64,000 nucleotides of DNA, from NCBI GenBank assembly GCA_964247055.1, contig OZ176051.1:10602001-10666000 (forward strand), written 5' to 3'. The translations under genes and the position numbers were made by a program. Below, one piece after another: positions 26,415-62,851 of the stretch. Below the pieces are notes generated by a model. The model saw only the letters and a list, made by a program, of their open reading frames with translations. It made no database searches and had not been told where the DNA came from. Every line of letters begins with the position of its first letter. Position 1 is the stretch's first letter. This stretch comes from Paragordius varius. Taxonomy: Eukaryota > Animalia > Nematomorpha.

Positions 26415-29400
26415 CTAAAATATCAAAAATTAAAAATCCCATAAGGAATGGTGTTTGCATATAATTTGCATTGATGAATACATAAATTAATACATGTGTA
26501 AAGATATTAGCTTGATTGGAATTTAATTTCACAGAAACAATGGTAATCACAGGTTTTCATAAGTGGTGTTAAAAATGAATAAATTTATCAAAATTAATAT
26601 TGAAAATTATTTAAAATATCATGCTATGTTTTTTTTGTTGATCAAGCAAGGCGGGTGATTTTCATTGAACCTCAACTATAATAAAACATGTATAAGTTTA
26701 TGATAAGAATATTTTATATGATAATAAATTATATGATTTACCCCCGGCTAAAATATCACAATCCACGATTTCAAAGTGGAATTCATGAACGTTGCCTTGC
26801 AAATTTGATACTGTACCATTCAAACCTATAAGATAGCTGTCTTGTAGCGTTTGAATTATTGGTAAGTCATTAGTATATTGATTGATGGTAATGCTTGTTG
26901 GTAATTGACTAACCGAATTCTGGTGGGAGGATATTTGTTAAAATTTATATAAATATACCATTTACAGTTCAAATTCACCCCTGAACAATCCAAATTCACC
27001 CTAAAATAAATTAGGTGTTTTTAAGATCAAAAATGACCTTTATTTTATAATATTTTTAAAATATAAAATTCTGTTTAAAATTAATATAATGCTGAACAAA
27101 TAATAAACTATGGTCGTAAAAATATATTTCATATTAATGATGAGTTATATTTGCCCGAAAACAGATATCTTTATTTTGGGGTGAATTTGAATTGTTCGAG
27201 GGTGAATTCGAATTGTTCGAGGGTGAATTTGAATTGTAAATGGTATATTATATATATATATATATAAATCGGACAAAATATAAATATATTGCATACTTGA
27301 TGAGCAATAACTATTGGGTTGAAACAGTTAACGAATGGCGTGGTATTGGGTTTAAGAGTCATATAACACATTGTAAATTCACAGGTCTCATTACTGGCCC
27401 CAACGTTTGCGACATACTATAAATATTTATCAAAGAGAGGATTATCAATTATTTAAAAGTTTAAGTTAAAAATATTTATAATAATTAATAACAAAGTAAG
27501 AAATACTTGACTCAATACAGTCATTGGGTACTGTTTACCATACAAATAGGTGATTTGATTAATATCTGTTTTTGATATTACATGACCAACTTCGGATTTG
27601 TATATGTCGGAACCATCAACTCTAACAACTATTTTGTTGGATATTTTTGCCACTTCAATTTCATCGTAGCTGTTTATGTAAATGAGAATATAGTATATTA
27701 GTTATAATTAACTAGGTTGTATGATAAGTTTATGAAAACCAAAATCTTACAAATAGAATGGGATATCATTTCCAAGAATTCTAGTTGTGCTCATTTTAAT
27801 GAATTTTTCGGTTAGGCTTATATCCTCACAGATATCTAATATATGTTATATGATATGATATAATTTTAAAAAATATTATTAAAATTTAATTAATATAAGA
27901 TTGGTGGGTTCAGCTACCTGTTGTTTGAGTAGTTGTTGACATTAATACAATGGGTGTTGTGGATGAACCTTATTATATAAAAGAGTTTAAACAATATGAT
28001 GGTGTCCTAATGTTAAGTCAAAAACATAGTTATAAGCCTACTAATAATCTCGCAAATATAATTTTTGTGATACAGTTGTATCCTTTATTTTATTAAAAAT
28101 TTATTTTTTTCGTTAAATGTGTATAAATATTTAGTAAAGAATGGAAAAAAACAAGAGCTCTATGGTATTAATAACAATATCATATTCATTAAAAAAATAT
28201 TATACCATAAAGGTCTTGTTTTTTCCATTCTTTACCAAATATTTATACCCATTTAACGAAAAATAAATTTTTGATAAAATAAAGGATACATGACTGTATA
28301 TTAATAATTAAATAGTTCTTTGATATTTACCGATTGTAGTTGGTGTTGTTGTGGAAATGTCTCCTGAACCAGAACCTAAAACCAAAAAATGTGATGTCAT
28401 AAATTTTATAATTTTATTTTCATATCTCTATTTTATAATTTTATTGATAATTTATATGTTTTTAACGAAAATTTATTCATAAATTATAATTTTTGGTGAT
28501 GTATGTATCAAATTATTCTAAATATTTACTGAGAGCTATCCATAAATGTATTTTTAATTAAACAAAAAAAGTTATATAGCGATGTTTAAACCTGATTCTG
28601 CAGTCGTGGTGGCTTGAGTGGTAGTAGATGCTGCCATTATAATATAAACAGTTAAATATTAATTGTTAATATTTTGAATGTATAGATTTATATGTAAGAA
28701 GTTTTTTTATAATCAAAAATAATTGTTTAACATTATGCAATAAGAAATAAAGTTTTTTTGTTTTATTTAAATAATGTTCCTAAGTTAACTACTAAATAAT
28801 ATCCACAAGGGAAACATAATTTGCTATAGTTGTTTTTTCGCCTTTTACAGGTGTTAGCCAATAATAATAATAAAATGTTCTTTGCTGTATTTAATAAATT
28901 TGGCTTTAACTAAAGAAATAAAAGCACCTGTCGCAGAGGATGTGGTGTTAAATGGAACGCCTTCGGTAGTTTGGGTGTATAAAGAAGTGGTTGTATCTGA
29001 AATGAAAATTATTACAAATTTAAAATGGTTTTATCAAAAGTTAAGATGTGTTTTTGTTTCTAACATAACTCATTTCAAATCTTTGTGTAAAGGACCACAA
29101 ATATATAATGAATATATAAAACACTACCATATATCGGCATTTTATAGCGGGAAAATAATTTAACAATTAAATGATAAAACATATATAATGTATGTTATGC
29201 AAATGTAATGATTTGCTCTATTTTATAATGTGTTTTGAGTTATGTTTGACTTATCTTTCGTTGAGGCAAATTTATTCTTTGTTGATATATGAATTAAACC
29301 ACTTGGATTTTTATGACATCAACTAAACCAACAATCTTATGGATTACATTGCAATCGATTCTAATTTTTATTCCGGATTTGAATCGGAATCTTTTTGGTT

Positions 29401-32400
29401 AGGGCTCTAACCAGTTTCATTTCATATATTTAAAAAACGGCTTCCTTAGACTTTTGTTTTTATTTTTGGAAAAAAACCTACGTCATGTGTTAGTTTTTGC
29501 ATGTATACTTATGATATATAACCTTTCATAGATTTTCTCATATTTAAATATCATAGTAAAAAAATAAATTTATAATTCTATATAATAATTATGTCACTTT
29601 GTCCACAATCGGCAATAACGAAATCGACGGAGTGAGTGAACCCATGAACTTGCGTATTTCCCGTAATACTTCTGACCAGCGCATTCATAAATATTTTGGG
29701 TTCGAAAGCTTCGGCAGAAACAGATGTTACCACAACACTGTTGGTATTTTGAGTGATTGTAACCTATAATATATCCGTTAAAAGAATATATAATAAATTT
29801 TTTGAGGGAAAATACCAAATAAAATTTTAATATATAGTTTTTTGCTTTTAAAGAAAGTAATTAAATTTTACATTCATTTGCGAAAATTCGTTGTGACAAG
29901 ATGAACTTGTCCCCTCATCGGACGTTCTCATGTACTCTAAACACAAGGTTAAATCTTCCTTTTGGCCAGGGACGTATGTTGCAGAAGCCAATAACTATAG
30001 AAAAGATATTCATTTATTATTAAGCAGTATAGTATTAATGAATGAAAAGGCTCTTAAGGGCAAATATAACTGATAAATTACATCACTAAGTATTTCATAT
30101 TGAGTCGTTTGGAAGACAGTTTGAATTTGACCAAGATAGATATAGTTATTTTGGCTAATATTGTTTCTGTGACAAACTTGACAACCTATGCTGAAATCCT
30201 CTTGAGTGGCTGAAATTGTATTGAAGATTTCGAAAACATCGAAATTCAAAACTCTCTTATTATCCAAGGTCGATTTAATGTATATTTTTGGAGGTCTAGC
30301 GAAATTTAAAATATAAAAAAATATAATAAATATAATTTGTGATGGTCAAATGTTCCAAAAGATGGAATATAACAAATTAATCTAGGCCATTAGAAATATA
30401 ACAAGTAAAATACTTGGAAATAATAAATTATTAATTACAGATATGAGGTGGCAGCATTCAATCCTAATATCTTGACAATTTCGGTTGTTTCGTAATATTT
30501 TGATTCAGATACATAGTCACATATATTGTTAGGGGGACTCACTGTATGATATGAAATATTTAGCATTAGAATTAATTCTGAAAACTCAAAATGTTGCAAA
30601 AAATTAATAAAACTTTAAGTTACCTGTTGTTGCGGTTGTGTAACCAGAACCACTGCCTATAAAATAAATATATATTATTTTATAAAAATCCTCAAAAAAA
30701 ACAATTTTAAACCAATAAAGTATATTTACCAGATTGCGTGGTTGATGAGGGACCTGTTGTGCTTGATGATGCATTAGCGCTTGTCGTAGCTATTTATATA
30801 AAAAATCTTTTCGTGATTCATTTTATCGGTAATAATTTTTAGGATGAAAAAGAAATGACAATAAAAATATATTTTTATAGCTATAAATATGTAAATAAGC
30901 CGGAAAGGGACGACCGGAATGAAAATACCATTATGTCAATTTACTAGTCATATTTTTAAAAAATATTTATAAGATTGCTGCCCCTGACACCATTTAGATT
31001 CGGTATCGATGAATATTTTAAACACTAAACACAATTTATACTCCTAATTATTTACTTGTTTCAAGAGTGGTAGTTTCAACAGTAGTAGATTCAGATGATT
31101 TCGGCACTAATCATAAAATGATAATATTTTATTTATATATTTATTAAAATAAAAATATAATAGTAAAAAGGTTTTTTTACCTGTCGTTGTTGGGTACGTT
31201 ATTGAAGTTGTTGACATGTCTCCAGAACCGGAACCTTAAAACAAAGAATAATGTTTATAAAAAATAATTTTTTTGTTTAAAAAAAAAAGATTATAGTTTT
31301 TTAAACCTGATTCTGTGGTGGTAGAGGAGGCTTCAGTGGTAGTAGATGCTGGCACTATAAAATATTAATTTTATAATTAGTAATTTTATATAAAAATTCA
31401 ATGTTAAAGAAATATTTTTATGGTGATTAATGCTCACTTGTATCGCAGTCTGTGCTTGTTGTGGTTGGAATTGCTGTTAGGAAGATAAGATATTAATTTC
31501 AAAAATATTGATTGAAAAAAGTTAAGTGAATTTATTTAAAATAAACATGCCCTTAGACTCAGGAGTATCCAACCAAATGGCTTAGCGGGACGCATTCGTA
31601 AAATATATGGACTTTATTAAATATTTTAATTTTCTTAAATAAATCTGGTAAATACTATTTTATAATCAATTTTCACCTGTTCATTAAATTTGTTTAAGGA
31701 AAACAATCTAATTTATATTTGAAATTTCTCACAGGCGCCGCATGCAAACCGCGGGCCCTAAAATTATTATAAAATTTTATCAAATAAATTAGCATTATAA
31801 ATATGCCAAATTAATGGTATAGTTATGGATGAAATTTTATTACACAGCCAATAGTATATTCAATTTTAATCGTAGGCTATATTGTCACCATATGTTTGCA
31901 TTGTATTACTCATTGACATGCATTTTTGGAGCGTATGAGTTACTTTTTTTACAAATTAAAAACTCAACTCCTACACGCATTATTGATTTCAAGAAAAAAT
32001 GACCCAAATCTGTCATTTTTGGTAAAATATATTCTTCTATAAGGAAATGATTACATTAATTTTCTTTTTTTATTAATTTAATCAATTATCGTCATCACGC
32101 ATAAACAAATTTCTTGACTGCTTCAAAATTAAGTTGTATTTTGAAACAAAATAATTATAATCCTTTTTAACATTTTTTACGAGGTTGTCGAGTGCGTTTA
32201 GGTGGGACCTCCACCTATCAATTAATACTAAAATTATTTACTTGTTTCAAAAGGGGTAGTCTCAGCAGTAGTAGATTGAGTTGATTGTGATACTAAACAT
32301 AAATAGAAATAATTATTTTTATATATTTGTTAATATAATAGTAAATATAATTTTATGTTTTTTACCCGTAGTTGTTGGGTAAGTTACTGGAGTTGTTGAC

Positions 32401-35400: not shown

Positions 35401-38400
35401 AATTTCTATATAATCGAATTTATGCAAATAAAAAATATTTTATTCTATAAATCTCTCAGTAAAAAATTAATTTTAAAGAGAAATTTACCAGTCGTGGATG
35501 ATACTACGGTTGTGTTGTAAGCATCACCGGTAGTTGATTTTACATATACGGACGTGGTTGTTTCTATTGTCAAACAGTAGAGAAAAAGTATATATAAGTT
35601 ATTATTTCTTTAAGAATTATAATATGAGATTAGCTAAATTATTAAAACTATATAATCATTTTAAAAGCTAATTACATAACTTATACGATTGATTTTAAAT
35701 TGGTAATTCGTAAAATTTATCTATTATGATGTAAGTTTTGTTTTATAATATATTGATCAAAATTAAAGAGTTACCTTGTTGATCACCACATTCGGCAATA
35801 ACAAAATCGACAGAATGATAAAATCCATATATTTTGGTTTTTCCTGTAATGCTAATGATCAATGCATCTTCAAAAGTGATTGGTTCAGTTTGCGAGGACT
35901 CAGACCCCACTACGACACTATTTTTACCTTGAGTAATTGTAACCTATAACATTCATTTTTGTTAAAAAGAGAAGTTTTATTAATAATATAAATCAATTTT
36001 TAATTAAAGTGGATGATGATTTAATTAAAAAAAATACATTCATTTGGGAAAACTCTTTGGTACAAACAACATTATTCAACCCGTCGGCCGTTCTCAGGTA
36101 ATGTAAGCAAAGGCTTAAATCTTCTTTCTGGTTGGGTGTATATGTTGTCACAGCAAACAACTAAACAATAATTATATATGATATAAGAAATAAAATCAAT
36201 TGATAATATATATATATATATATATATATATAGTAAAATGGATGAAATAAACAACTTTACAAGAAATAAAGAAATAATTAACAAATTACATCACTAAGAA
36301 TATTGTATTGGGCGGTACCAAACACAGATTTAATTCCATTAAGATAACCATTCGTTATTTGACTAATATCATTTTTTTGAATATCTTGACAGCTCATAGA
36401 ACCAACGCCTCCGATACATCCTGGATAAATTGTGTTGAAAATTTCGGACATATCAAAACTTAAAATTCTCTTGTTATCCGTAGTGGGTATAATAAAGATT
36501 TGCTCAGGTCTGTATAATAACATAAAATTATATCAAAATTATATTGTTATTAGTCGTGTAGCTTACAAGGAAAATTAAGTCTTATAAAATCCTACCAAGA
36601 TTTAAGTGAGAAAGTTGAAAAATAGCGCTTTTGATATTAAATTATTTTATTTTTAAAAGTTTAAAAAAGTTCAGCCGTAATGTGTTATGTGGGATTAATT
36701 ATTTCATTATCAGTTTTTTTGGGATTACATTATATATCAAATATGTTTTGTTAAAATAATTGTAAAGGATGCCTTGTTGATTGACTCTAATGGAGTTAAA
36801 AAACTTATCTATGAATCTAGAAAAAAAGTTGAATTTTCAGCTGCGAAGACTTTCATTCATTTACTTTTATAATTTGTTATATTAAATGAATATGCATTCT
36901 ATCAAAAATAATATCATAATATGCCCTAATTGCGATATTGCGATATGTGATAAAGTAACAAATTCTTAAATAACCCAATTCTCATAACCTAAGGCCCTCT
37001 GTTTTGATATGTATTATGATTCTGTTTTTATCGTTTTAATCAAAGTGCCTAAAAATAATTAAAAAAACTTACAAGGAAAGTGTGGTTTCATTCAGTCCTA
37101 ACATTTTAAGAATTTCCAAGGTGTCGTAATTTTTTGCTTCGGATGTGAAGTCACATACGTTGGTGGGGGGTGTCGCTTTAAGATTTAAATATTTTTTAGT
37201 TAGAAAAAAAATAAATACCAAAGTATTTTAAAAAAGTAAGCAAAAATTACTTGTTGTTGTCGTAGATCCAGAACCACTACCTAAAAAATAAAAATATTGT
37301 AAAATTAGCATGGTATATATAAATGTATATATGAATAATATATTTAATGTTGATTTAAAATTTACCAGATTCCGTTGTAGTTGAGGGAGTTGATGAGCTT
37401 GTTGACTCAGTGCTTATGGTACCTACATATATAAAACAAAATATATACAAATTAAATTACATTGAAATAAGTAATTTCAGTGACAATTTTTTCTCACTTA
37501 ATGGACTGGTGAAACCTGATCCAGATCCGCCTGCAAAAGCAAAGAAAAGACATTAATAGATGTTTGTATATGGGTATATTTTTAACAATTAATTTTAATC
37601 ATAATCTAATTTACTTTGTGTCGTGTAAGCAGTAGGCGAAGTGGTAGGTATAACTAAAGCAATAGTAGGAAATTATATTTTAGTTATTTATGGAAAAATA
37701 TCATATTTTTAATATTAAATTATAATTAACGTTTTTATTGTTTTTACTTTCATCGCATTCTTTAATCACAATATTTGCCGTATGGTGATATCCATGAATG
37801 TTGTAAAAACCTCTCACTTCAGCAACAAAGGCATTCTTAGTCCTATTTATGCTCGGTTGTCCGTTAACATGTGTTATTACCGTAACATAATTTGGTTCTT
37901 GACGAATTGTTGCCTTTTATGTTTTATAATAAAAAATTTTAAATTTGTAAAAAATGAATTATGTATTGAAATCAGAAGAGTTTTTTTGGAAGAATTTTAG
38001 CTTAACATACTGTTTGAACCAAAAAATGGCCATTACGGTTTCAAATAATTTACTGAATCGTTTAAAATATTTTATATTTCGCAAAAAAGTGTTCAAACAA
38101 TAATATTTCCGTTCACACATTTAAATTTTTAGGACCGAAACCAATTGCCCATATTAGTTATTCTCAAAAAAATATTTGCAATCCAATTTTTGGAAGAACG
38201 TTTAAGGACCGAAAAAATCGGAGGTGCAACAAATTTCTGCATTATTACTCCCTTGCTTTTTAGTAGCGACCCACCTAAACCCCATAAAGGGAAAATGGAA
38301 CATTTTCCGTGTTATTATTTTCAAACTACTAATACAACAAAAAACGCATTTATGATTTTGGCCATATATGGAAATGGTATATTTTTACCCTTAAAATATA

Positions 38401-41400
38401 AAAAAATTGTTTGCTTAGCCAAGAGTTGGCCAAAGTTGATTTTGGTCTTAATGCAAACTAGGGTAATTCTAATAACTTAAATTTTGTACACTATAAATTG
38501 GGACAATAAAATAGGTGTTACATTTCTATATTCAGTCATGGGTGAAAAACATTTCGTTCGATGCGTGGTTTCATCACGATCAAGGAAGAATGTACAGATA
38601 AGTAATAAGGCTCTTCCCGTCATATTTTGTTCCACATATAGCTGCAAATAAAACAGGAATATTATTATAAATATATAAGAATTGTTGGTATGAAGAAATG
38701 TTTTTTCCTTATTTAAGAGACAAACAAACTTACATTGCTTTCTATGGTAACGTTTTGAGTTTGGAAGGTTCGTTGAACAAAAACTATTTCGTTCAATTTG
38801 AAACGGTCGACTTTGTTAATCAAAGATATACATTCAGGCCTATTGTGATAACAATCGATTGATGTATTATATATTTCTTTGGCATCAATGACCCAAGTCA
38901 GGGTAGTTCCGTCGCGACGGATAAATGTTTTTTCTGGCCTAAATGGATTTGAAAAATATAATAAGGAATTTTTTTCTAATATTTTAATAAAACTATTTTT
39001 GAAATAAATATAGGGGTAATAAAATTTACAAGTATTTTGGATAATTAGGGATATTAAGGACTTTTCTCATGTCGTACCATCCAGTTTCAGTAATCTCTTT
39101 GCATATATCGGTTGCTAAAAGATTAATATATACGCACAGTAATTAAATGAAATATATATAATTTAAAAATATGCTAAATATATTTTCATTCAAAAAAAAC
39201 AAGGTGTCTCTTTTCCTTTAAAGAAATAAATAGCATATTATAAATCTTTATTTAAATTTTTTGATATGGGTGACATCTAGTTTATATAGTTTTGATTACA
39301 GTATATAGCCATATCTCAATGGTTTCATAGGAATTTAAATTGCCAATAGGGAAAAATATCCAAGTTTGCTCATACATATATTTTAATTTTTATTCCTTCT
39401 TGGTAATTTAAAAGTAATATTAGCCAATATAGCTGTTTACTGTATTTATAAAATAAATAAATATGTTTACGTTGTTGGGTGGTGGTTGTAATAATAGATG
39501 GTGTGGTCGTACCTAAAATAGAAAATAATATTTTAATAATTTTATATATTAAAAACACTATATCTTAAAGTCATCATAACTAATGAAAATTAAAAAATCT
39601 TTTTAAAGGTAAATTATTATAACTATACTTTTGTATGGCGTGGTAGTTGAAATTGTCCCTGGTGTTGTACTTTCAGTTTTTACTAATTGAATAATTTATT
39701 AATTTGAAAAATTAATGCATAAAAAGGTCTGTTTTAATTTTTTGGAAAAAATGTTAATTTTAGCTCACTTGAAGGATCAGACACGGTGGATGATGTTGGG
39801 GTGACTGTAGTTGTGCTACTGCCTAATAAATTACATAATAATGTTGGTTGACAAATATAAAATTGTTATAATATTTTTTTATCTACAATTATTAATTTTT
39901 TTGAAAAAAAAATTAAAAAATTACCAGAAGAATCTATGGGTGTAGTTGTTTCAGTGGGAACTGTTGAAACAGTGGTGGATACTGTATATTAATAATTATA
40001 TTAGAATAAGAGTTGATTCGCATCTCCTAATTTAATCAAATAAATTTTGGGCTTAAAGGGGATTATTAATAAAATATTTTTCTATTCCATTTTTTATATA
40101 AAGAAACAGAAGTTTACAAATATAATTCAAATATAATAATTATTATTTATTATATTAATTATTGCTCTTAAGTAAATTAAATAATTATATTAATTGTAAA
40201 AAAGATATACCAGAGTCGACAGGGGTTGTAGTTTCAGTGGTAGGAGTTGTTGAAATGGTGGATACTAAAAATATTAGAGTCAAAATATAAAAACAAAAAG
40301 ACAAATATATTTTAAAAAAAAGACCGTTATATACATTCTTTAAAATAAAAACTGCAATGTATGAAATAGAAATGTCAATTTGTAACACAACCTATTAGAT
40401 AATTAACAATTGCAATAAAATGTTTATATAGTAAAATTAATGTTTAATTAATAAGAGAATTTAATTTTATAACATATTCCCCAAAAAGAAAGCCAGATAT
40501 ATGGCATAATAAATATTTTACCTGGAGCGCAATTATCAATGATAATACGAATGGAATGATATGCCCCATTTAAGTCATAAGAGCCTGAAGTTTTAGTTAC
40601 GAAAGCTAACGCTTTTCTATTTTGAATAGGTTCACCGTTTACAAGCATATCCATAAGTAATCCATCCGATTCTTGTTTAACATTCAACTAAAAATAAATT
40701 TAAATAATAAAAAATTAATAATGTTTTTTAGGTATTCTCTCCAAAAATTTATATAGCATGCAACATATAATAAAATTATTATTAGTATATTCAAATTTTC
40801 ATTACTATTTTCTCATTGGTTTCTGGGATATGACATGTTGAATAAAGACCTTCTGTAAGTTGGGAATAGCAAACGGTTAGTGTTGCTTTAGAAGTGGTAT
40901 TTTTATCATGTAGATCAAACTATATATATAAAAATAATTATAAAATTATTTACAATATAATTTATAAAAATGTCAGTCAGTTAGTTAAATGATAACTTAC
41001 ATCGCTAACAAACTCATAATCTTGCACGCCAAACGCATTTGTAACAAATCTTAAGGCTTGAACACCATATCTACGGACAGAATTTACAGCTGCATCGCAG
41101 TTTGGATCAAAAAGAGGGCAGATATTTTTATTTGCCTCATAGATTTCGGGGAAATCTAAGGTCCATACTAATTGGCCTTGAGGAGTTCGTTCAATGAATG
41201 GATTCATAGGTCTACACAAATATTTAGTGGAATTAAAAAAACGTTTTTTACCATTGTTTTCAGAATTCTGGTTCATTATAAAATTAATAACCTAATTACT
41301 TCTCTGATTTTAAATCAATGGCGCCCGAACCAACATAAATGGCTTTGCGGTGTTTATTTTCGATCAAAAAAAATAGGCGGCCTTCGAAATGTTTTAATAA

Positions 41401-44400
41401 AATTCCAGAAAACTTTTGAAAAATTTCGAACACAACATATGGACTATTTAATCCACCAATTGCAAGTTTCTATTTTAAAAATTTGAAAAAACTTATTAAT
41501 TTTACCAAGATTTATTATAATATCACAATATTTTTGCCTATATTTGTGGGTCACTCATGATTTAAATAATAAATTTGTTTTTAACACATTAGATAGGATG
41601 AAAAATAGGTATAAAGTGTTTAAATTCATACACATATGTGGGATAATTCTCAATTTTAAGGTATTGATTTATGTTATATCGACCAGACTGTTGAATCCAA
41701 TCGCAGATATCCTCGGGCATTGAAGCTAAAAAACAAAAATGTAATTTATATATCCATTATATATTAGCACAAAATGAATATAAATAAAGATAAATTGGTC
41801 TAAAATGATTTTTTTACTCGTTGTTTCCCGGGTTGTTGTAGTTATGGTACTACTCATAGGTGTTGTAGTTTCTATACATGAATTGATAGAAAAAATGACA
41901 ATTAATTTTAATTATTTAAATATATATAATTTTTTTATAATAAAAAATAAATATACCTTCTGATTCTTCGCAATCTTTGATGACAATTTTGAATTTGTGT
42001 CGATTACCGGACACTTCGAAGTTCCCAATCAAATAAGTAACGAAAGATTTCGTATAAATTTGGGAACTAATGGCCCCCGTTGTACCATATTCCTCCACAT
42101 ACACATTGACATTTTGTTGTATAACTTTGTTCTATACACAAAAAATCAAATTATTTTACAAAAATTTATTTACAAATTATATTTTCATATTTATAGTGTC
42201 AAACTTAGAGTAATTTTAAAAAACTTGGATATTTTTGCATAAATTTGCAGTTTTAACAAGCTGAAATAATAAAGGTCATGTTGCGTTAAAAGTAAAAAAA
42301 CTAATAAATAGAATAGTATAACCAGATAAAAGCCAAAATGAATATCATATAAACGAAATTAAAATGGAGAACTGTTCTCACGAAAAACATCGGATTGCGA
42401 CAAGGGTTTTATCGAAATTTAGCACCCAATGCTAGTTTCAATCCAAAAACCAAAATTTTAAAACTTTTGACTCAAATTTGCCATCAAACTTTGACATATA
42501 TCATATAAAACATATTAAAATATTGTGTTTGATAATGTAATAAAACTTAATTACTATTTTCGTTGTGGAAGCAGGTACGAAACAAACAACATTGGCAACA
42601 TCGTCATCAAAATGGAGACGACATAATTTCATCGGTTCTGTCACATAGGGTGAATCAAAAGATACCACAAGCTAAAATTTTATAAATAGATAAATGAATT
42701 AATTAATTTTATAAGATTATCAATATCAATACATGATTGACAAATTGAATTTGCTAATAAACTTACATCACTTTCTATGGTATAATTTCCTAGGACAGAA
42801 TCTTCCATATCCCTACGATATGTGTTATGAAGCCAAACAATTTCATTTCTTCTAGAGTCACCAACACCGGCTCCTTTAGATCCACCCATATCTTTTACGG
42901 TAAAGATTTGATTTCCGCTTACTACCCATGTGATAAGGCCATTTTTGCGCTCTAATTCAATCTTTTCTGGTCTAATATTTGTATATACGGACAATTATAA
43001 ATGCGGTTAAAAAATCTCGATTTTTATATCCCTAAATCAGTGGTGTTACCAGAAAGGGGGTATAGAAAATCTAAGGGGAGGGGGGGGGGGCGAATAATTA
43101 AGGAAAACGTAAATTTATGTTGATTGACATAATTTTTATTATTATTTTATTTAATTTAAATTAAATTTATAGTATTGGGAAGAATCATTGTTTGTTAACA
43201 CACATATTTCTCTAATCATTTTTTCTTACTAAATATTAAAAATAAAATAGCGTTTAAAAAGCTAAAAATAAAAATGTTTTAATAAATTTTGCATTTTTAT
43301 AGTCGTTTTTTTTGGAGAAGAGGAGTGCGGGGGGAGGCACAAGATTTTTTTCTCAATTGGTGGGATGAAAAAAAAACGGTTGGGAACCACTTCCCTAAAT
43401 GTTTTGACCAAAATGAATATTTATTTCAAATATTTTCATATCATTTTTTGCGTTAAGCAAATGTATTACATGAAATCCGGAATGGGTTCATCAATTACAT
43501 CTCTAATGGTATAATTTCCGGTTTCCGTTACTATATCACACATGTCTGGGATTGCTACATGTAAGTATATGTATATACAATATTTAATTCAAAATATATG
43601 AAAAAATAAATTATTTTCCAATGAATTTGTAATAAATATCTTTACGCATTGGGGTTGTGGTTAGCGTAGGGACAGTTGGAGTCGTAACTGTAGTTGTTTT
43701 TTCGGATGTTGCTAAAAAAATAATTGATTCAGAGAAAAGGTAAATTGCTTTTAACCTCTGTATTTTGAAAGCCTTATTAGGACAGTTACGGATTTATTAG
43801 TAAAAATATTTTAGTTAAATCTCAATGATTTCAACGTCTTTTTTATTCACTTTTATTTGCGGTTAGATCAATTATTTGGAAATATAACCATATGCATTTA
43901 TTTTGATTGAATAATTAACTTAAAATAAAATTTACTGCCAAATAAAATCACTTTAGAAGTGTAAGTTTATAAATATCCTGGTTTTGTAGATAATATTATT
44001 ATAGTAAAGTGTTGTGTTCAAGAACCCTGATCAATCGAATTTATATAAATGGAAAATTAGTTACTTGTTTGAGACGACGTAGTTTTAGATGGTTGGCTGG
44101 TTGAAGTTGTATCACCAGATCCTGAACCACTCACTGTAGTGGATTCTGTTTCAATAGTTGTCGATTCTAACATAAACCAATGACGCATTAAAAATTAAAA
44201 AAAAACTGTCCCACAAAATTATATTAATTAATGGGAATAAAACTTTCATTTGGAAATAATATTTTACCCGAAGATGATAAAGTGGTTGATTTTGGTGTGG
44301 TAGATTTCGTGTCAAACTCTGCCCCAGTAGTGGATTGCGTCTCTGTAATAGTAGGTGTTGGGGTGGTAACCGATGGTGTAGGCATAGTGGTTGTCGTAAC

Positions 44401-47325
44401 TTTAATGACAAAAAGAAAAGAAAACAAAATTTTAACATAAATGTTATTTGGGAAATTATTTATTATAATTAAAAGAAAAAAATAAAGCTATTTTGCATAC
44501 ATGGGGAGCATTCCTCCAATAAAATTTTGAATGTATGTTTCCCAGTTTTAACGATTCTGAAGTCGCCATAAATAAGCGTTATGAATTTTGGTAATATTTG
44601 GCCATTACTGCCAATTATTTGAATACCGTCCGTGCCTTGGACAATGGTATCCTATATAATAATAAAATAATAAATATATAAAAAACCCTTCACATAATTA
44701 ATTTAATTTTTCTCTGCTAAAATTATTTTTTTCAATAAATCCCTTTATCAAAAACCATTATAATGATTATATTAACAATTTTTACATCGATTTTAGTATT
44801 TATTTTAAAACATTGATCGTGCTTCTCAAGTTAAATCATTTAAAAACCAGAAAAATATTTGCCTAAACAACATCGCTACCCAAAGAGCCTAGTGTAATTA
44901 AGATACTTTTCTAAAGCAGATAACCTTATATTTAGGATGTTAAGCAAATACAATTTTTAGATTGTGTTACATAAATTATATAATTGATTCTCCATACATA
45001 CCTGGTTTAGAGTTGTCATAGGAATAAAGCATGTCACCGAAGGGGTAGACACTAATTCAACAGCGCAAAGTTCAATGGGGGAAACCATTGTATTGTTTAT
45101 AATTATTTTGAGCTGTGGAATATATATATATATAACTAAATATTCTGCTTTATGAGATACGGAATTAACTAACTTTTACTTTAAAAAATTTTAGATTTGT
45201 AATAAATAAAACAAAATCAGGTGTTCATATAAAAGCTACTTACATCACTTTCAATAACGGTATTATTGTATTTGTTATCAGCATTATTGTTTTTGTGCGT
45301 GAATGAAAATCGTTCTAGCCATACGATTTGATCTGTTTGAGTACTTGGTACTTCAGATAAGTTTTTCATTTTTGGAATGTAAATGTCTTCCGCTGATATG
45401 GGCCAATAAACTAGATCCATAGTGCGTTCAAGGTAGACTTGTTCCTCGCTATATAAAACAAAATAAATCGATAGTTATTTTTAGACTATGTAAATGTCAA
45501 GTATTTTCCTAAATTAGCGTATATGGTTTCAAAAAAGGAATTATATTCAAAACTTTATAAAAAGACCCGCAAGTTTTTAATTATTATATTTAATAAACGA
45601 TTAAAAATCTAAGCTAGAGCTACATTTTTTGACCTAAGAATAAGTTTCCAACTATTGCCGCTATCAAATTTATAATATTGTCCAAAATTTTGTTGTTCCG
45701 AAGTTAAATTCCAAAATTAATAAAATTCTTATGGTTGAAATCATAAAAGGTAAAAATATTAAAGAGACTTACAATATAGCAGGTAAGGGTTTAATAAAGT
45801 CCCTGATCTTGTAGAATCCGGATTCCGTTACAGTGATACAAATTTCTTTGTGATCTAAGAATGTTATCAAAAAATAAAAACAAATAAAAATAAAAAGTTA
45901 AAGTCTTAAAAAGTGGATAAAAAATTAATTTTCATACCAACAAAAATGGTGGTTTGAGTGGATTGTGTTGTCGTAATGGTTTCCAATGATGTGCCTAAAA
46001 AATTGTATTGAAATTTTTGTATAAATCTTATTAATTTTGCTCAATTTTTTTAAAAAAATAAAAAAAATACTTTGCGTTGTAGTTACGCTGGGAGTTGTTG
46101 AAAATCCAGAACCAGAGCCAGAGCCTAAGTAAGGGATAAAAATATTAAAAAAACTCAAAACAAATTTAGTTAATAAAAACGTAAAATGGGTTATTTTTAA
46201 TAAATATCTAAAAATCTTATTGTAAAGTAAGATGTAAACCTGTGGTGCTTGCACTGGAAGGTGTGGTTGAGAATCCTAAATCATACCGAAAAAAATATTT
46301 AATTGGAGCTAAACTATGCCAAAAATAAATTGAATATATATCAAACATTCTTTTAACTCAAAGTTTTTTATAAGTCTTAAAAAAATAAAAGTTAATGTTT
46401 TGAATGTTAATTATTACCAGTGGTTGTTGTATCCATTGAAATGGTAGTTTCTTCAGTTTTAACTGATGTTACAGTCGATTCCAAAGTTGTGGTGCCAGAT
46501 CCACTTTCTGTAAAATATTTAACATAATCAATATGTCTTTCTATAAACAGATTTTATAATTAATGTGATTTAATAAGTTATTTTATTAATTTGACACATA
46601 AATTTTATATTTCTTAATCATAGCCTTTAAAAAATGTTAGTTATTAAAATTCTTTGGGGCACATTGTCAAATACCTTTTTATACATACTAGTTAATCTCT
46701 AAATATCATTGGGTCAAAATTACCCCATATTCTTGCCAATGATAAAATTGTGGTCTTACATGTAATATTTATTCTGCTTAATATAGTTGTTTCAAATTTA
46801 TAAGTTAATGTGTAGACCTGTGGTGGTTGTATCAAATGGTGAAGGTGTCGTTTCTTGGGTTATAACTGATGTATCGGGTGATTCTTTGGTTGTGGTACCC
46901 GAGCCAGTTTCTAAAAAAATAATCGATAACATTATGAGTTGAACTATGAGAAAATTATCATTAGATATATCAATTAATGAGGCAAACAATCAAAAAATTA
47001 GGCTGGTCCAAATAAAAATCTTACTTTAAAAAATAAATTTTAAAAAACGGTTTATTATACGAGGAGATCATTTAAATAAATTTGATTATGTCTGAATTTC
47101 CATACTTTTAACTAAATATTTGTGTTTAAAAAAATTGCAAAAGTTTTAAACAAACCTTCAGTTGTTGTTGGGGTCGTGGTGGTCTCAACGGTGTCGGCTG
47201 AATAAGTCATAGTTGATTCAGTTGATGTCCCAGTGGTAGATTCTGATCCGGAACCAGATTCTAATGAATTTTATGAATTTTTTATTGCATAATTAATTTG
47301 TGGTTGAAAAAATATGGATTGCATA

Positions 47326-47359
<34 letters not shown>

Positions 47360-54131: not shown

Positions 54132-54169
<38 letters not shown>

Positions 54170-59888: not shown

Positions 59889-59946
<58 letters not shown>

Positions 59947-62851
59947 AGACTTAAGACAGATATAATTTTTATGTTTGTTTATAAATATATATACCTTGAG
60001 TAGTTTCCGATGAACCAGTAGAACTAGTTGACAGGGTTGTGGCTAATATAATATAATCATAATTAAATATTATTGATAATAAAAAATATATGATGATGTA
60101 TAATAATATATTTTATTTCATACCCAAACAATCAATGAGTAAAAAGCTTAGGGAATGACGATTTCCATCACATTCAAAGATAGAAGGGTCGGCAAACATC
60201 AAAAACGAATTTGATAATTGTTTAGTTTCCCCATTTTTATACTGCATATATACGCCTTGTTCATTGGAAACGACAGTATCCTACGCATTTTTTGCAATAA
60301 AATATAATTAGATTATATATATGTAATAAATAGGTTCTAAATATAAAAATTAAAACCTTATATATCATTTTTAATAAATATTACCAGTTGTTGGAGGTTG
60401 GGTAGGAAAGGACATATTTTGCTTAAAACACCTGATTTTTCATTGTAATAACACAAAGTTGGTGTGTATATTGTTTTGGGGTTGATAACTTTGCATGTCA
60501 TCTGTGATAATAAGACAAGAAATTGAAAATAAAAGGACGTAAAAATATTTTTGATTGATAAAACAATATTGTAATTTTTTACAATTAATTTTTTACAGTT
60601 ACAATTTTCATTGCTTTATTAATTTCGCACCCAAAATCATAAGATACCTTTATAACAAGATTTAAAAAAATAGGTTTCTATAAACATCTGTCTTTTACTT
60701 TTTATGTTTTGTCTCTATTATTTTAATTTTTTCTGTATAAGAATTTAGAGTAAAATGAAATTTACCGTAATACTCACAAGATATAATTTTATTTTTTTTA
60801 GTTTTAAATTAGGCTATAACATGTATATCTTACATCACTGTTCATTGTCATATGCATGGGGTATAAACGTGAAAGCCATGTATATTCATCCATTAAGTTG
60901 GGATACCAATCTTGAGAACCGCCAGTAAGCATGCCCATATGCTGATAAACTGCATAAATCTTTTCATCTTCCGGAACTCTCATGAGCTCAACAGATCCCC
61001 TAAACAAAGAATTGAAATATATTTAGCCGAGTGATTTTGAGAAATAAGTGATAATTAATACTTTGCGGATGGTATTTCATTTCCAGTTAACATTTTTATA
61101 TCGTATGTCCCATTGGTTGAAACCATGTCACACAAAGCTTCTAAAAAATTTGGAATACATTTAATCAAAAAAATTATTCTAAATTTAATCTTATAGTAAA
61201 ACAACATCCACAATTTTATGCATTATTTACCTGGTGGGGCTGTTGTTGTTTCAATATCATCCGTCGTAGTTGTTTCTATTTCTATTATTAAATTTTAAAG
61301 AATTTTTTAAGTATATATTTATTTAAATTTATTTTATAAATTATTATATGAATATAATATACCATCAGTCGTAGTGGAGAAAAAGGTTGACAATGTTGTA
61401 CTGATAGGTTTAGTTGTAACGTCTAGAAATATATAATTATGTAGCAATTATTTTTAAACACAAAGATTTTACAAAAATATATTACCTGTGGGAGATGTGG
61501 TAGATAAACTTTGATCTATATCAAAATATATAATATATTAATATCATCTGGTATTAATTTAAATATTCTATCAACCCAATTTAACACAAAGGGTGGTCAA
61601 ACTTTCAACACTACTTTTTGAGAAAATTATACACTAACACATATTATTAATTAATTAACATGCATAAATTACTAAAAATGCTACGCATTAATTATCTGAC
61701 ATAACTAATCACCGCCTTTTATATAACTCAATAGGTGAAAAAGCCGGTGTTTCTCTATGCAAATTATGATATTTGATTATAGGTTTCGTATTATGTTTTT
61801 TCACCCGAAAATTTAAAATATTTAAATTAGATATCCTAAATCAGGTCTTAGTCTGGGCACCCTCGGGTCTAAAGAGAATCATAAAATTGAAACTTTATAG
61901 AAAAAAATAAAAATAATACCGCAATGTTTAAAGATGATTTTGAGTTTATGCATGCTTCCACGAATAGCAAAATCACCCATTATGTAGATGATAAAATGTC
62001 CTTCATTTTGACTGGGTACTTTGCCATCAATGCTAACACCAGTTGGTAATTGATTTATGGAAATCTAGTTGATAAGATGAAATACATTTTTATTATAAAA
62101 AGTGGTTAAAACAAAAATATATTTATATTTATTTTATCACAATAATTTAGATTAACATACATCATGTGACATTTCTGGAACAAAGCAAACGATAGGATTT
62201 GCTGTTTCATCAATGATGGCAGTGCACAACGTGGTTGGACAAGTTGGGCATTTTTTAAGATCGATTTGTAACTAAATACATTATATATCGAGATAAGAAA
62301 TAAATTTATTATGGTATTTCGCCAAATGAAAAGGATCATAGTTTTAACCCTTTTTTTACTATAATCAAACCCATTCGAGATCAATATACCTTGGTAAAAA
62401 ATTTCATTTCCAAGCGCTAAAACTAATGCGGACATAGAAATCCCTAAACAAAAATTTAAATTTAAATTCAGAAATTTATACATTTGTTTCAATTATCCTT
62501 CATCCGTAAAGATATATTTGGGATAGTCATTAACAGTTAGGGTAGAATTCAAGATATTAAGGAATAATTGCCAATATTTTTTTTTATGGAATAAACCAAA
62601 GCCTGGTCATGAAATATTTGAATAGTAATATCTTAACACTTACATTACTATCGATGAGAACATTCTTTCCTTTACCGTTTTTGGTGTTATTGGGTTTTAG
62701 CGATTGTAAAATGAGTAAATCCTTAACCAAACTGTTTTGAGCTGATCGACTGGGAAAACTCCAAGGGGCTCCGGATGGCAAATATAAATGCTTTCCCTCA
62801 ATTATCCACACTAATTTATCACCTTCACGGATGAATTTAACATTCTCCGAC
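26380..62851 (-). CDS. Giant multi-exon mucin/proteoglycan-like gene: ~110 exons, ~3,400 aa, nine copies of an unassigned Cys-containing module separated by PTS-rich cassette exons; 5' end not resolved
   Basis: Manual exon chaining from 62851 to 26742. Every exon is bounded by AG/GT on the minus strand (two use a shifted AG), phases are compatible and there are no in-frame stops. Summed length is ~10,230 nt: 35 module exons and 75 phase-1 exons, each a multiple of 3. Products are T/S/P-rich with SGSG motifs. The 3' coordinate assumes the candidate terminal exon at 26380-26414. Confidence 0.85.
26742..27835 (-). CDS. Globular module 9 (4 exons)
   Basis: Exons 27751-27835 (DICEDISLTEKFIKMSTTRILGNDIPFY), 27507-27669 (YDEIEVAKISNKIVVRVDG...PMTVLSQ), 27297-27416 (YVANVGASNETCEFTMCYMTLKPNTTPFVNCFNPIVIAHQ), 26742-26919 (NSVSQLPTSITIN...LQGNVHEFHFEIVDCDILAG). 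Phases 1-2-0-0-1. Confidence 0.8.
26956..27245. mobile_element. MITE family A copy 1 (~290 bp; TIR CCATTTACA(A/G)TTCAAATTCACCC, TA flanks, 21-bp subterminal repeats)
   Basis: TA-ccatttacagttcaaattcaccc ... gggtgaatttgaattgtaaatgg-TA. Non-coding interior, intronic, four more copies in the window. Confidence 0.85.
27918..28996 (-). CDS. Four phase-1 PTS cassette exons between modules 8 and 9
   Basis: 28928-28996 (69 nt), 28592-28630 (39 nt, shifted acceptor), 28331-28375 (45 nt, GSGSGDISTTTPTTI), 27918-27968 (51 nt). Confidence 0.75.
28071..28298. mobile_element. Foldback MITE, Tc1/mariner-type ends (TA|CAGT...ACTG|TA)
   Basis: About 100-bp arms are near-perfect inverted copies (tgtatcctttattttattaaaaatttattttttcgttaaatg / catttaacgaaaaataaatttttgataaaataaaggataca) around a ~25-bp loop, with TA on both sides. 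Confidence 0.8.
29598..30541 (-). CDS. Globular module 8 (4 exons)
   Basis: 30439-30541 (SPPNNICDYVSESKYYETTEIVKILGLNAATSY), 30082-30295 (PPKIYIKSTLDNKRVLNFDVFEIF...QYEILSD), 29872-29994 (LLASATYVPGQKEDLTLCLEYMRTSDEGTSSSCHNEFSQMN), 29598-29763 (VTITQNTNSVVV...HGFTHSVDFVIADCGQ). Confidence 0.85.
30624..35563 (-). CDS. 18 phase-1 PTS cassette exons, including a tandemly repeated 4-exon block
   Basis: Block exons: a (36 nt, IPTTTSTDCDT) 34154-34189, 32625-32660, 31438-31473; b (45-48 nt) 35137-35184, 34033-34077, 32494-32541, 31307-31354; c (54-63 nt, GSGSGDMSTT) 35011-35073, 33901-33954, 32366-32419, 31181-31234; d (42-51 nt, TTAETTPFET) 34878-34919, 33783-33833, 32242-32292, 31056-31106. Also 35489-35563, 30730-30789, 30624-30656. 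Confidence 0.85.
31560..31760. mobile_element. Degenerate hAT/Charlie-like MITE remnant, copy 1
   Basis: Starts caggagtatccaac, resembling Charlie-type CAGGGGTGTCCAA ends, and contains GC-rich gcgggacgcat / ccgcgggcc motifs. No right TIR or TSD seen. Confidence 0.45.
32744..33000. mobile_element. Degenerate hAT/Charlie-like MITE remnant, copy 2 (co-duplicated with the exon block)
   Basis: caggaatgtccaacacaaatggcttagcgggccgcat ... gcatgcagaccgcggggcc, at the equivalent intron position to copy 1. Confidence 0.45.
33298..33542. mobile_element. MITE family A copy 2 (degenerate)
   Basis: ctatttacaattcaaattcacc ... gggtgaatttgatt...gtgaattgtaaatt, with interior similar to copy 1 and in the same orientation. 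Confidence 0.7.
34554..34810. mobile_element. MITE family A copy 3
   Basis: ccatttacaattcaaattcaccc with three 21-bp subrepeats; right end gggtgaatttgaatt...ggggtgaattt is truncated. Confidence 0.75.
35775..37175 (-). CDS. Globular module 7 (4 exons), close paralog of module 8
   Basis: 37073-37175 (TPPTNVCDFTSEAKNYDTLEILKMLGLNETTLS), 36290-36509 (PEQIFIIPTTDNKRILSFDMSEIF...QYNILSD), 36038-36160 (LFAVTTYTPNQKEDLSLCLHYLRTADGLNNVVCTKEFSQMN), 35775-35943 (VTITQGKNSVVV...YGFYHSVDFVIAECGDQQ). Confidence 0.85.
36206..36232. repeat. (TA)n microsatellite, intronic
   Basis: Direct reading of the sequence. Confidence 0.9.
37251..37653 (-). CDS. Four phase-1 cassette exons (two with GSGSG)
   Basis: 37615-37653 (39 nt), 37498-37530 (33 nt, SGSGSGFTSPL), 37366-37422 (57 nt), 37251-37280 (30 nt, GSGSGSTTTT). 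Confidence 0.8.
37748..39114 (-). CDS. Globular module 6 (4 exons)
   Basis: 39030-39114 (TDICKEITETGWYDMRKVLNIPNYPKY), 38734-38938 (PEKTFIRRDGTTLTWVIDAKEIYNTSIDCYHNRPEC...NVTIESN), 38522-38641 (LYVEQNMTGRALLLICTFFLDRDETTHRTKCFSPMTEYRN), 37748-37913 (ATIRQEPNYVTV...RGFYNIHGYHHTANIVIKECDE). Confidence 0.85.
39471..40264 (-). CDS. Five phase-1 PTS cassette exons
   Basis: 40211-40264, 39925-39981, 39769-39822, 39629-39682, 39471-39512 (54, 57, 54, 54 and 42 nt). Confidence 0.8.
40522..41725 (-). CDS. Globular module 5 (4 exons)
   Basis: 41632-41725 (SMPEDICDWIQQSGRYNINQYLKIENYPTY), 41001-41211 (PMNPFIERTPQGQLVWTLDFPEIY...YEFVSD), 40806-40919 (FDLHDKNTTSKATLTVCYSQLTEGLYSTCHIPETNEKI), 40522-40687 (LNVKQESDGLL...SGSYDLNGAYHSIRIIIDNCAP). 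Confidence 0.85.
41818..41871 (-). CDS. Single phase-1 PTS linker exon between modules 4 and 5
   Basis: 54 nt, ETTTPMSSTITTTTRETT, AG/GT bounded. Confidence 0.8.
41957..43554 (-). CDS. Globular module 4 (4 exons)
   Basis: 43470-43554 (IPDMCDIVTETGNYTIRDVIDEPIPDF), 42767-42971 (PEKIELERKNGLITWVVSG...EIVWLHNTY...NYTIESD), 42555-42671 (LVVSFDSPYVTEPMKLCRLHFDDDVANVVCFVPASTTKI), 41957-42131 (NKVIQQNVNVYV...IGNFEVSGNRHKFKIVIKDCEESE). Confidence 0.85.
43038..43392. mobile_element. Non-autonomous hAT element with 8-bp TSD CCCTAAAT
   Basis: ccctaaat at 43030-43037 and 43393-43400 flanks ends CAGTGGTGTTACCA / TTGGGAACCACTT (imperfect TIR). An 8-bp TSD with central TA is typical of Buster/Charlie hAT elements. 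Confidence 0.8.
43646..44399 (-). CDS. Three phase-1 PTS exons between modules 3 and 4
   Basis: 44268-44399 (132 nt), 44065-44166 (102 nt, VSGSGSGDTT), 43646-43711 (66 nt). Confidence 0.8.
44501..45854 (-). CDS. Globular module 3 (4 exons)
   Basis: 45773-45854 (HKEICITVTESGFYKIRDFIKPLPAI), 45244-45448 (EEQVYLERTMDLVYWPISAEDIY...QIVWLERF...TVIESD), 45002-45112 (LKIIINNTMVSPIELCAVELVSTPSVTCFIPMTTLNQ), 44501-44651 (DTIVQGTDGIQI...YGDFRIVKTGKHTFKILLEECSP). Confidence 0.85.
45938..46910 (-). CDS. Five phase-1 PTS/SG cassette exons
   Basis: 46818-46910 (ETGSGTTTKESP), 46418-46507 (ESGSGTTTLES), 46240-46275, 46071-46124 (GSGSGSGFSTT), 45938-45994. Confidence 0.8.
47156..53064 (-). CDS. Array of 13 paralogous 99-105 nt exons (ESGSGSESTTxTPTQSTMTYSADTVDTTTTPTTTE) plus one 93-nt ETGSGS exon
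   Basis: 52960-53064, 52646-52750, 52426-52527, 52041-52142, 51681-51785, [51201-51293], 50884-50982, 50522-50626, 49836-49940, 49481-49585, 49096-49197, 48300-48404, 47768-47872, 47156-47260. All phase 1-1, open, AG/GT bounded. Confidence 0.92.
47329..47356. repeat. (TA)n microsatellite, intronic
   Basis: Direct reading of the sequence. Confidence 0.9.
48464..48638. mobile_element. Foldback MITE, Tc1/mariner-type ends (TA|CAGTATG...CATACTG|TA)
   Basis: The arm cagtatgcattttaatggttgcttatttcacaatatag matches the reverse complement of ctatagtgtgaaataagcaaccattgaaatccatactg. Inner arms (catagtagtgtat / atacactactgtg) also pair. TA flanks. Confidence 0.85.
53329..60042 (-). CDS. 18 phase-1 PTS cassette exons with diverged internal duplication
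   Basis: 59995-60042, 59802-59882, 59274-59438, 58677-58784, 57986-58054, 57838-57897, 57401-57442, 57216-57311, 56702-56803, 56381-56443, 56250-56309, 55776-55820, 55606-55704, 55336-55437, 54824-54922, 54440-54493, 54269-54340, 53329-53373. All are multiples of 3. The five exons 58784-57216 are paralogous to the five exons 56803-55606. Confidence 0.82.
54132..54160. repeat. (TA)n microsatellite, intronic
   Basis: Direct reading of the sequence. Confidence 0.9.
55009..55302. mobile_element. MITE family A copy 4 (interior inverted relative to copies 1-3)
   Basis: TA-ccatttacagttcaaatttaccc ... gggtgaatttaaactataaatgg-TA. Confidence 0.85.
57488..57780. mobile_element. MITE family A copy 5 (interior inverted relative to copies 1-3)
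   Basis: TA-ccatttacaattcaaatacaccc ... gggtgattatgaataaatgg-TA. Interior ttcgggctaatataactcattattaatatgaaa is approximately the reverse complement of the copy 1 interior. Confidence 0.85.
59895..59941. repeat. (TA)n microsatellite, intronic
   Basis: Direct reading of the sequence. Confidence 0.92.
60124..61140 (-). CDS. Globular module 2 (4 exons)
   Basis: 61062-61140 (ALCDMVSTNGTYDIKMLTGNEIPSA), 60834-60999 (GSVELMRVPEDEKIYAVY...EYTWLSRLY...TMNSD), 60385-60501 (MTCKVINPKTIYTPTLCYYNEKSGVLSKICPFLPNLQQL), 60124-60280 (DTVVSNEQGVYM...FECDGNRHSLSFLLIDCL). Confidence 0.8.
61231..61515 (-). CDS. Three phase-1 PTS exons between modules 1 and 2
   Basis: 61486-61515 (30 nt), 61363-61422 (60 nt), 61231-61281 (51 nt; an alternative in-frame acceptor gives 45 nt). 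Confidence 0.78.
61920..62851 (-). CDS. Globular module 1 (three exons found; first exon not identified)
   Basis: 62644-62851 (SENVKFIREGDKLVWIIEGKHLY...NVLIDSN), 62161-62271 (LQIDLKKCPTCPTTLCTAIIDETANPIVCFVPEMSHD), 61920-62064 (ISINQLPTGVSIDG...MGDFAIRGSMHKLKIIFKHC). Confidence 0.8.

Follow-up and report, generated by a model that had tools for sequence, protein, structure and literature searches.

Several described systems build Pro/Thr/Ser-rich (PTS) protein regions from many small exons, or alternate such regions with folded domains, and they form the background for the locus reported here: a mucin-like gene at 26.7-62.9 kb on the minus strand of a 64,000-nucleotide stretch of the hairworm Paragordius varius (Nematomorpha; assembly GCA_964247055.1, contig OZ176051.1, positions 10,602,001 to 10,666,000; hereafter the window). 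We think it fairly likely that this is a giant modular mucin/proteoglycan-like gene in which tandem duplication of phase 1-1 exons lengthened the spacers and splicing is mostly constitutive. Among the closest known systems, chicken Muc13 derives its PTS domain from many exons with one repeat per exon, and its authors proposed in 2006 that splicing could control PTS length (PMC1552070). That protein is transmembrane, with SEA and EGF domains and a single PTS block. DMBT1 (also gp340 or salivary agglutinin) is a string of globular domains set apart by short Ser/Thr-rich spacers that carry O-glycans; its unit number differs through changes in genomic copy number, and alternative splicing has also been considered (PMC3100851). 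The globular units of this vertebrate protein are SRCR domains, joined by CUB and ZP domains, and its spacers are single SIDs of 20-24 aa. Short symmetric exons, of 3-81 bp, are also the hallmark of the micro-exon genes (MEGs) of schistosomes (bioRxiv 10.1101/2023.06.21.545858). MEG and SmPoMuc products are secreted by the parasite and vary by exon skipping; those of MEGs are small proteins encoded almost wholly by micro-exons, which have long introns between them and are framed by conventional end exons, and the variation has been shown there. SmPoMuc contains tandem small repeat exons, and related arrangements recur elsewhere: the MUC16 repeat region is made of repeated multi-exon units of a module plus PTS sequence, the CD44 variant exons and CD45 exons A-C are symmetric Ser/Thr-rich O-glycosylated stalk exons that are spliced combinatorially, and titin PEVK is an extensible spacer encoded by arrays of short symmetric exons. 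These last four come from other taxa and carry different domains (SEA, link, fibronectin type III, Ig), and we know of none among them that combines 76 PTS exons with the module described below. To our knowledge, hairworms belong to the most poorly studied animal phyla, with no secreted matrix or coat protein described so far.

Like chicken Muc13, the hairworm gene distributes its PTS sequence over many exons, 76 in total; an exon of 99-105 nt occurs 13 times among them, and a four-exon unit 3-4 times. It differs in lacking SEA, EGF and VWD domains, in having nine modules, eight PTS blocks and several exon families, and in showing no homology to Muc13. It is likewise not homologous to DMBT1, and its spacers are arrays of up to 37 exons rather than single elements. 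With MEGs and SmPoMuc it has short symmetric exons in common, but it is giant, known from its sequence alone and without sequence relation to them, has exons of up to 165 nt and mostly short introns, and devotes half of its protein to folded modules. It falls outside the MEG class, with 26 of its 76 PTS exons longer than 81 nt, module exons of 79-220 nt encoding half of the protein, and a product of ~3,400 aa. It does possess the long, repetitive PTS regions that characterize mucins in the broad sense. A first, sequence-only reading of the window had suggested an undescribed system. This does not hold, since both the multi-exon PTS region and the idea that splicing sets its length were published for chicken Muc13 (PMC1552070) and the alternation of spacers with domains is found in DMBT1 (PMC3100851). 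The same reading's statement that vertebrate mucins typically encode the PTS region in one large exon stands as a rule with a published exception, again chicken Muc13 (PMC1552070). The novelty lies in the size of the array, with 76 exons spread over eight spacers, in the phylum that carries it and in a module family without assignment, not in the principle. The locus provides a well-supported model of a giant mucin/proteoglycan-like gene of a kind that standard annotation is likely to fragment.

Exon structure, selection and growth of the spacers

Open stretches on the minus strand fall into small Thr/Ser/Pro-rich ones alternating with larger ones that repeat a Cys-containing pattern. The exon chain was rebuilt independently of the sequence-only reading by dynamic programming and then curated by homology among modules; the first automatic chain had contained ~25 low-scoring filler exons and had broken some module exons, and these were replaced with the help of inter-module homology. 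The resulting gene model covers ~36 kb with 111 exons, every one of them bounded by AG and GT, and has a coding sequence of 10,268 nt (3,422 codons) that is free of stops and corresponds to ~3,400 residues. The 76 PTS exons measure 30-165 nt (median 57), are all multiples of 3 and all begin and end in phase 1; interleaved with them are 35 module exons forming nine modules. The earlier count of 75 open PTS exons with the same size range and phase was thus reproduced, with one exon (35489-35563) added afterwards, as were the roughly 110 exons and the nine modules, here M1-M9. Introns range from 62 to 1,122 nt (median 129), and GC content is 0.41 in exons vs 0.22 in introns, in a region where the DNA outside a satellite described below has 26-27% GC. 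This agrees with the 26.93% GC given for the Gordionus montsenyensis assembly (bioRxiv 10.1101/2023.06.26.546503).

The uniform phase was also recovered when sites were chosen blindly. We took the best-scoring AG and GT near the ends of each PTS-rich open stretch, using generic splice scores and no phase information, and phase (1,1) resulted in 65 of the 81 stretches that had such sites (binomial p = 5e-47 vs a chance expectation of 1/9). As a control, we counted loci that contain an open, PTS-rich segment running from AG to GT in phase (1,1): the minus strand has 78 of them, the plus strand 2 and shuffled sequence none. Judged from its sequence, the locus is one real, translated gene for a mucin/proteoglycan-like glycoprotein, and both the single long gene proposed earlier and its alternation of phase 1-1 PTS exons with nine copies of one domain are supported.

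The 13 members of the 99-105-nt exon family (47.1-53.1 kb) have an exon identity of 0.84, while their 100-nt intron flanks on each side reach 0.61, vs 0.59 in a shuffled control. Read in the inferred frame, the nine copies of exactly 105 nt differ 28, 73 and 459 times at the first, second and third codon positions. This pattern, with flanking introns at background level, indicates purifying selection on the peptide of each copy next to introns that have fully diverged. Selection of this kind on the 105-nt copies rules out that the array is dead or arose by chance, and it fixes the reading frame.

Traces of how the array grew were found by self-blastn, which replaced an uninformative clustering of exons with 150-nt flanks that had fused neighboring exons. 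A four-exon unit at 31.0-35.2 kb is present in 3-4 copies that are 68-86% identical over 360-1,100 nt, introns included, and in the 47-53 kb block, units align over 500-800 nt with 73-74% identity. Tandem units like these can still be aligned together with their introns, which shows that exons and groups of exons were duplicated in tandem as the spacers lengthened. Duplication preserves the frame only for symmetric units that match the 1-1 phase of the modules, so a uniform phase 1-1 is expected from growth alone; the requirement of symmetry for frame-keeping duplication is the classical exon-shuffling argument. In the mechanism we propose, single exons and small exon groups would have been duplicated repeatedly in tandem via unequal recombination within introns, and only symmetric 1-1 exons could have multiplied without breaking the frame, leading to 76 short phase 1-1 exons. 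The uniform phase would then be a by-product of gene growth and not a sign of regulated skipping. Most PTS exons would probably be spliced in constitutively, and length variation would arise more likely between alleles, by gain or loss of exon units, than by combinatorial splicing; both of these points we infer from sequence. The locus is an unusually clear case of a mucin spacer that lengthened as phase 1-1 exons were copied in tandem, every copy being kept under purifying selection.

The eight linkers built from these exons total 1,717 aa, about half of the protein, and range from 18 to 1,059 aa each. Their overall composition is 37% T, 20% S, 7% E, 6% P and 6% G, the T+S+P fraction is 0.60-0.72 in each of the eight, and exon families repeat within them. 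Thr/Ser/Pro-rich composition predicts dense O-glycosylation and possibly glycosaminoglycan chains. SGSG motifs occur 25 times in the spacers, mostly where an exon begins, and in 21 cases the residue before the motif is D or E; these acidic Ser-Gly-Ser-Gly motifs are candidate glycosaminoglycan sites. The glycoprotein is probably secreted. Separately, some PTS exons on the minus strand contain a single conserved Cys (31438-31473, 32625-32660, 34154-34189, 56381-56443 and 57986-58054), in peptides such as TSTDCDT and ANPDCP, and these unpaired residues could form intermolecular disulfides.

The module and its relatives in Gordionus

Each module comprises ~190 aa, contains Cys residues and is encoded by four exons; the nine copies lie at ~62.8, 61.0, 45.4, 42.9, 41.2, 38.9, 36.5, 30.3 and 27.6 kb. 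Exon A (~30 aa, phase 1>2) has one conserved Cys, exon B (~70 aa) runs from phase 2 to phase 0, exon C (~40 aa, phase 0>0) has two conserved Cys, and exon D (~57 aa, phase 0>1) carries the final one. Copies of exon B are only 16-34% identical to each other, which makes the repetition of the module old. The sequence-only reading had described the four exons as phase-locked together. The phases run 1>2, 2>0, 0>0 and 0>1, but exon C is symmetric in every module (0-0, 111-123 nt), so the module is not fully phase-locked, and in M1 only three exons can be recognized within the window.

A profile of the nine exon B copies was searched against 1.84 billion representative proteins and returned four matches. 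Two were true, P0002 (1.2e-13) and P0003 (5.8e-8), both from the hairworm Gordionus sp. m RMFG-2023; they correspond to XP_065322587.1 (P0002; "mucin-22-like", 1,090 aa) and CAK9294258.1 (491 aa). The other two, P0001 and P0004, were false matches to unrelated repeat proteins. Word-based searches added three further Gordionus proteins and no other organism, giving five relatives in all. The window's own protein was absent from the databases, both with the exon B profile and in a search with a 140-aa open stretch around exon B of M1. By tblastn, Gordionus modules share 31-60% identity with the window copies, and in the Gordionus proteins, too, modules alternate with PTS- or Ser-Gly-rich linkers. 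These relatives differ in being shorter (324-1,090 aa), with partly fragmentary models. One of them, P0005, begins with a signal-peptide-like exon.

The Gordionus genes were annotated with guidance from RNA-seq (bioRxiv 10.1101/2023.06.26.546503). Their intron phases at three loci (L001-L003) follow the order SP|1|A|2|B|0|C|0|D|1, and the PTS linker between modules occupies an exon of its own, in phase 1-1; the arrangement in the window is identical. Exact look-ups of P0002 and P0006 yielded no locus. This match with phases deduced separately gives independent support for the module exon structure. Sequence homology together with shared intron positions and phases places the window modules in one hairworm module family. 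At the nucleotide level, L001-L003 show no similarity to the window, and blastn of the window vs 92 kb of Gordionus loci returned one 37-nt match only. The window therefore probably represents a different region or species, and its gene would be a paralogue or that of another hairworm.

Some features of the Gordionus models deserve mention in their own right. Some modules are modelled without exon C, so that B runs straight into D, as in P0002:644-786 and P0003:345-485, while P0007 has an exon A followed immediately by a D-like exon; locus L002, 10495-11848, belongs to the same set of observations. These joins reflect either an annotation error or real in-frame skipping of module exons. The RefSeq model of P0002 also contains two nearly identical halves, seen in residues ~1-130 vs ~690-790 and in the blocks near 650 and 1005, which suggests a very recent tandem duplication or an artefact of assembly or annotation.

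The module matches no known domain. Pfam searches with ten single module exons and the whole Gordionus homologues gave sub-threshold noise and nothing above cut-off, and a profile search of PDB sequences with the module gave 0 matches. For folding we used as a proxy a Gordionus module, P0005:25-206, instead of a spliced window module, and an alignment that mixed whole modules with exon fragments and misplaced exon B was kept out. The AlphaFold model (pLDDT 86, pTM 0.81) shows a short N-terminal helix, a long helix and a beta-sandwich that makes up most of the structure. Foldseek vs PDB found at best galectin carbohydrate-recognition domains (E = 0.011, TM ~0.2), which is not convincing, and VIA-align, in a wide search and a second look, reached at most Z = 4.8 (PL7 alginate lyase, galectins and Toxoplasma galectin-like domains), under the tool's stated background of 7-8. 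From the predicted structure, the module may at most be called a jelly-roll, lectin-like sandwich, and the description of the domain as unassigned withstood the Pfam, PDB-sequence, Foldseek and VIA-align searches.

Some assignments of the module or gene were rejected. A galectin or concanavalin-A-like lectin fold is not borne out by the Foldseek E-value of 0.011, the Z of 4.8 and the 0 PDB profile matches. A CUB-like domain formed by exons A and B found no support in Pfam or fold searches and was dropped. A gel-forming or SEA-type mucin (MUC2/5/6, MUC1/13/16) would carry VWD/C8/TIL/CK domains, or an SEA domain plus a transmembrane segment; the locus does not fit this class, given the lack of Pfam matches above cut-off and a model unlike SEA or VWD folds. 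The locus yields a lineage-restricted, predicted extracellular domain of ~190 aa with a confident structure prediction and no known relative. In the protein that we propose, nine disulfide-bonded beta-sandwich modules of this lineage-restricted family would be strung on extended spacers.

Probable constitutive splicing and the competing explanations

The sequence-only reading had claimed that any subset of PTS exons could be skipped in frame, and formally this is so: all are phase 1-1, and only 23 of 6,972 possible junction codons create a stop, leaving 99.7% of arbitrary joins stop-free. In addition, 59 of the 84 exons that end in phase 1 end in G, so that the residue at the junction is mostly set by the downstream exon alone. 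These properties invite the explanation that combinatorial skipping of 76 symmetric cassettes tunes spacer length and glycan load, or provides a variable coat against insect-host immunity, which we consider unlikely. It gains from the organism being a parasitoid, from the same hypothesis having been raised for chicken Muc13 (PMC1552070) and from the symmetric micro-exons with splicing variation in schistosomes (bioRxiv 10.1101/2023.06.21.545858). The splice signals, on the other hand, are no weaker in PTS exons than in module exons, with 5.73 vs 5.77 of 9 donor consensus positions matched and polypyrimidine contents of 0.57 vs 0.61. Short introns favor splicing by intron definition, in which exon skipping is uncommon, and many of the introns flanking PTS exons measure 62-130 nt, with 30 of the 67 PTS-PTS introns at or below 130 nt. 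Moreover, the exon copies do not share conserved flanking intron elements, and free third-position divergence around a conserved peptide is the pattern of constitutive coding sequence, not of rarely included cassettes. The RefSeq names available for Gordionus bear no isoform labels, although this is weak evidence. Altogether, these sequence hints lean towards constitutive splicing of the PTS exons without amounting to proof, and regulated combinatorial skipping is possible yet rather improbable. There is a slim chance that combinatorial inclusion of PTS exons, perhaps also of exon C, produces a large repertoire of isoforms of differing length and glycan load and thereby a variable coat or secretion that helps the larva escape encapsulation in the insect host, as a convergent counterpart of schistosome SmPoMuc/MEG variation on a much larger scale. 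If skipping were true, no larger array of interchangeable mucin exons would be known, and the gene could readily serve to test the 2006 hypothesis that splicing controls PTS length.

The region might instead hold several shorter genes of the same family, as the annotated Gordionus relatives are short (324-1,090 aa). This is quite unlikely given that phase continuity extends over 111 exons on one strand without a stop and that every module ends, and the unit after it begins, in phase 1; no exon resembling a signal peptide came to notice inside the gene, although no search aimed at one was made there, and the short Gordionus models look fragmentary, several of them starting or ending inside a module. 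That the array is a decaying, unexpressed pseudogene or a chance pattern in AT-rich DNA, for which one may cite that the start of the gene is a candidate only, is extremely improbable. It is strongly disfavoured by 3,422 open codons in DNA of 26% GC, the 28/73/459 differences over the three codon positions, a GC content of 0.41 in exons vs 0.22 in introns, the control counts of 78, 2 and 0 loci, and intron phases conserved with annotated Gordionus genes.

Several points weigh against a giant gene with mostly constitutive splicing. Symmetry is exactly what a skipping system needs as well, and structure alone is compatible with regulated skipping. Expression of the gene and its splice junctions are predicted from the sequence, and heavy O-glycosylation of the spacers is expected from their composition only. 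At the 5' end, M1 has only three recognizable exons in the window (B, C and D), and no exon A with a fitting phase was found there. The 5' end, and hence the signal peptide, is represented within the window by a candidate only: a putative first exon at 62937..62983 on the minus strand, with an ATG at 62983, a hydrophobic peptide of 15 residues and a phase-2 donor at 62937 that fits exon B of M1. Its assignment as the first exon is speculative, and the gene may in fact start outside the window. For the 3' end there are two options. The last recognizable coding unit, M9, ends at a good phase-1 donor at 26742; should that donor be bypassed, the open frame would continue to a stop at 26701. Upstream of M1, we also noted an open minus-strand frame at 63170-63293 with an exon A signature (Cys, then G.Y, then Y-P) but lacking a GT donor in phase 2. 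This could be an exon A in decay, or an exon A spliced at an unusual site.

Layout of the gene and surrounding repeats

All coordinates below refer to the minus strand, and the units are given in the direction of transcription. Module M1 (61920..62851) consists of B 62644-62851, C 62161-62271 and D 61920-62064 with phases 2>0, 0>0 and 0>1, and linker L1 (61231..61515) follows with three phase 1-1 PTS exons of 30, 60 and 45 nt. After M2 (60124..61140; A 61062-61140, B 60834-60999, C 60385-60501, D 60124-60280) comes the longest linker, L2 (45938..60042), whose 37 PTS exons of 36-165 nt, all phase 1-1, encode 1,059 aa and include the 13 copies of the 99-105-nt exon at 47156-53064. M3 (44501..45854; A 45773-45854, B 45244-45448, C 45002-45112, D 44501-44651), which has a tblastn match to Gordionus P0002, is separated by the three PTS exons of L3 (43646..44399; 132, 102 and 66 nt) from M4 (41957..43554; A 43470-43554, B 42767-42971, C 42555-42671, D 41957-42131), whose exon D shares 49% identity with a P0002 module. 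The shortest linker, L4 (41818..41871), is one PTS exon of 54 nt.

Then follow M5 (40522..41725; A 41632-41725, B 41001-41211, C 40806-40919, D 40522-40687) and L5 (39471..40264; five PTS exons of 42-57 nt), and M6 (37748..39114; A 39030-39114, B 38734-38938, C 38522-38641, D 37748-37913), where the donor of exon C was picked by homology and 38492 is an alternative. L6 (37251..37653; four PTS exons of 30-57 nt) leads to M7 (35775..37175; A 37073-37175, B 36290-36509, C 36038-36160, D 35775-35943), and L7 (30624..35563; 19 PTS exons of 33-75 nt) includes the four-exon unit that was tandem-duplicated 3-4 times with its introns. The array closes with M8 (29598..30541; A 30439-30541, B 30082-30295, C 29872-29994, D 29598-29763), L8 (27918..28996; four PTS exons of 39-69 nt) and M9 (26742..27835; A 27751-27835, B 27507-27669, C 27297-27416, D 26742-26919).

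Positions 1-25282 of the window are occupied by a 482-bp tandem satellite (52.7 copies, 98% matches) with a GC content of 0.37 vs 0.26 in the neighboring DNA, and its boundary lies 1.4 kb downstream of M9. An Rfam search of the whole window, satellite included, gave 0 matches, so the satellite contains no known RNA gene. Within introns, an interspersed repeat of ~300 bp is found at 26951-27265, 33295-33539, 34528-34808, 54994-55333 and 57468-57785, in both orientations and with 70-80% identity. It holds short GGGTGAATT(T/C)GAATTG direct repeats, was not found in the 92 kb of Gordionus loci and is probably a non-autonomous transposon. Finally, self-blastn detected two intronic palindromes, one at 28056-28313 (~260 bp, arms 81% complementary) and the other at 48460-48642 (~180 bp, 71%).

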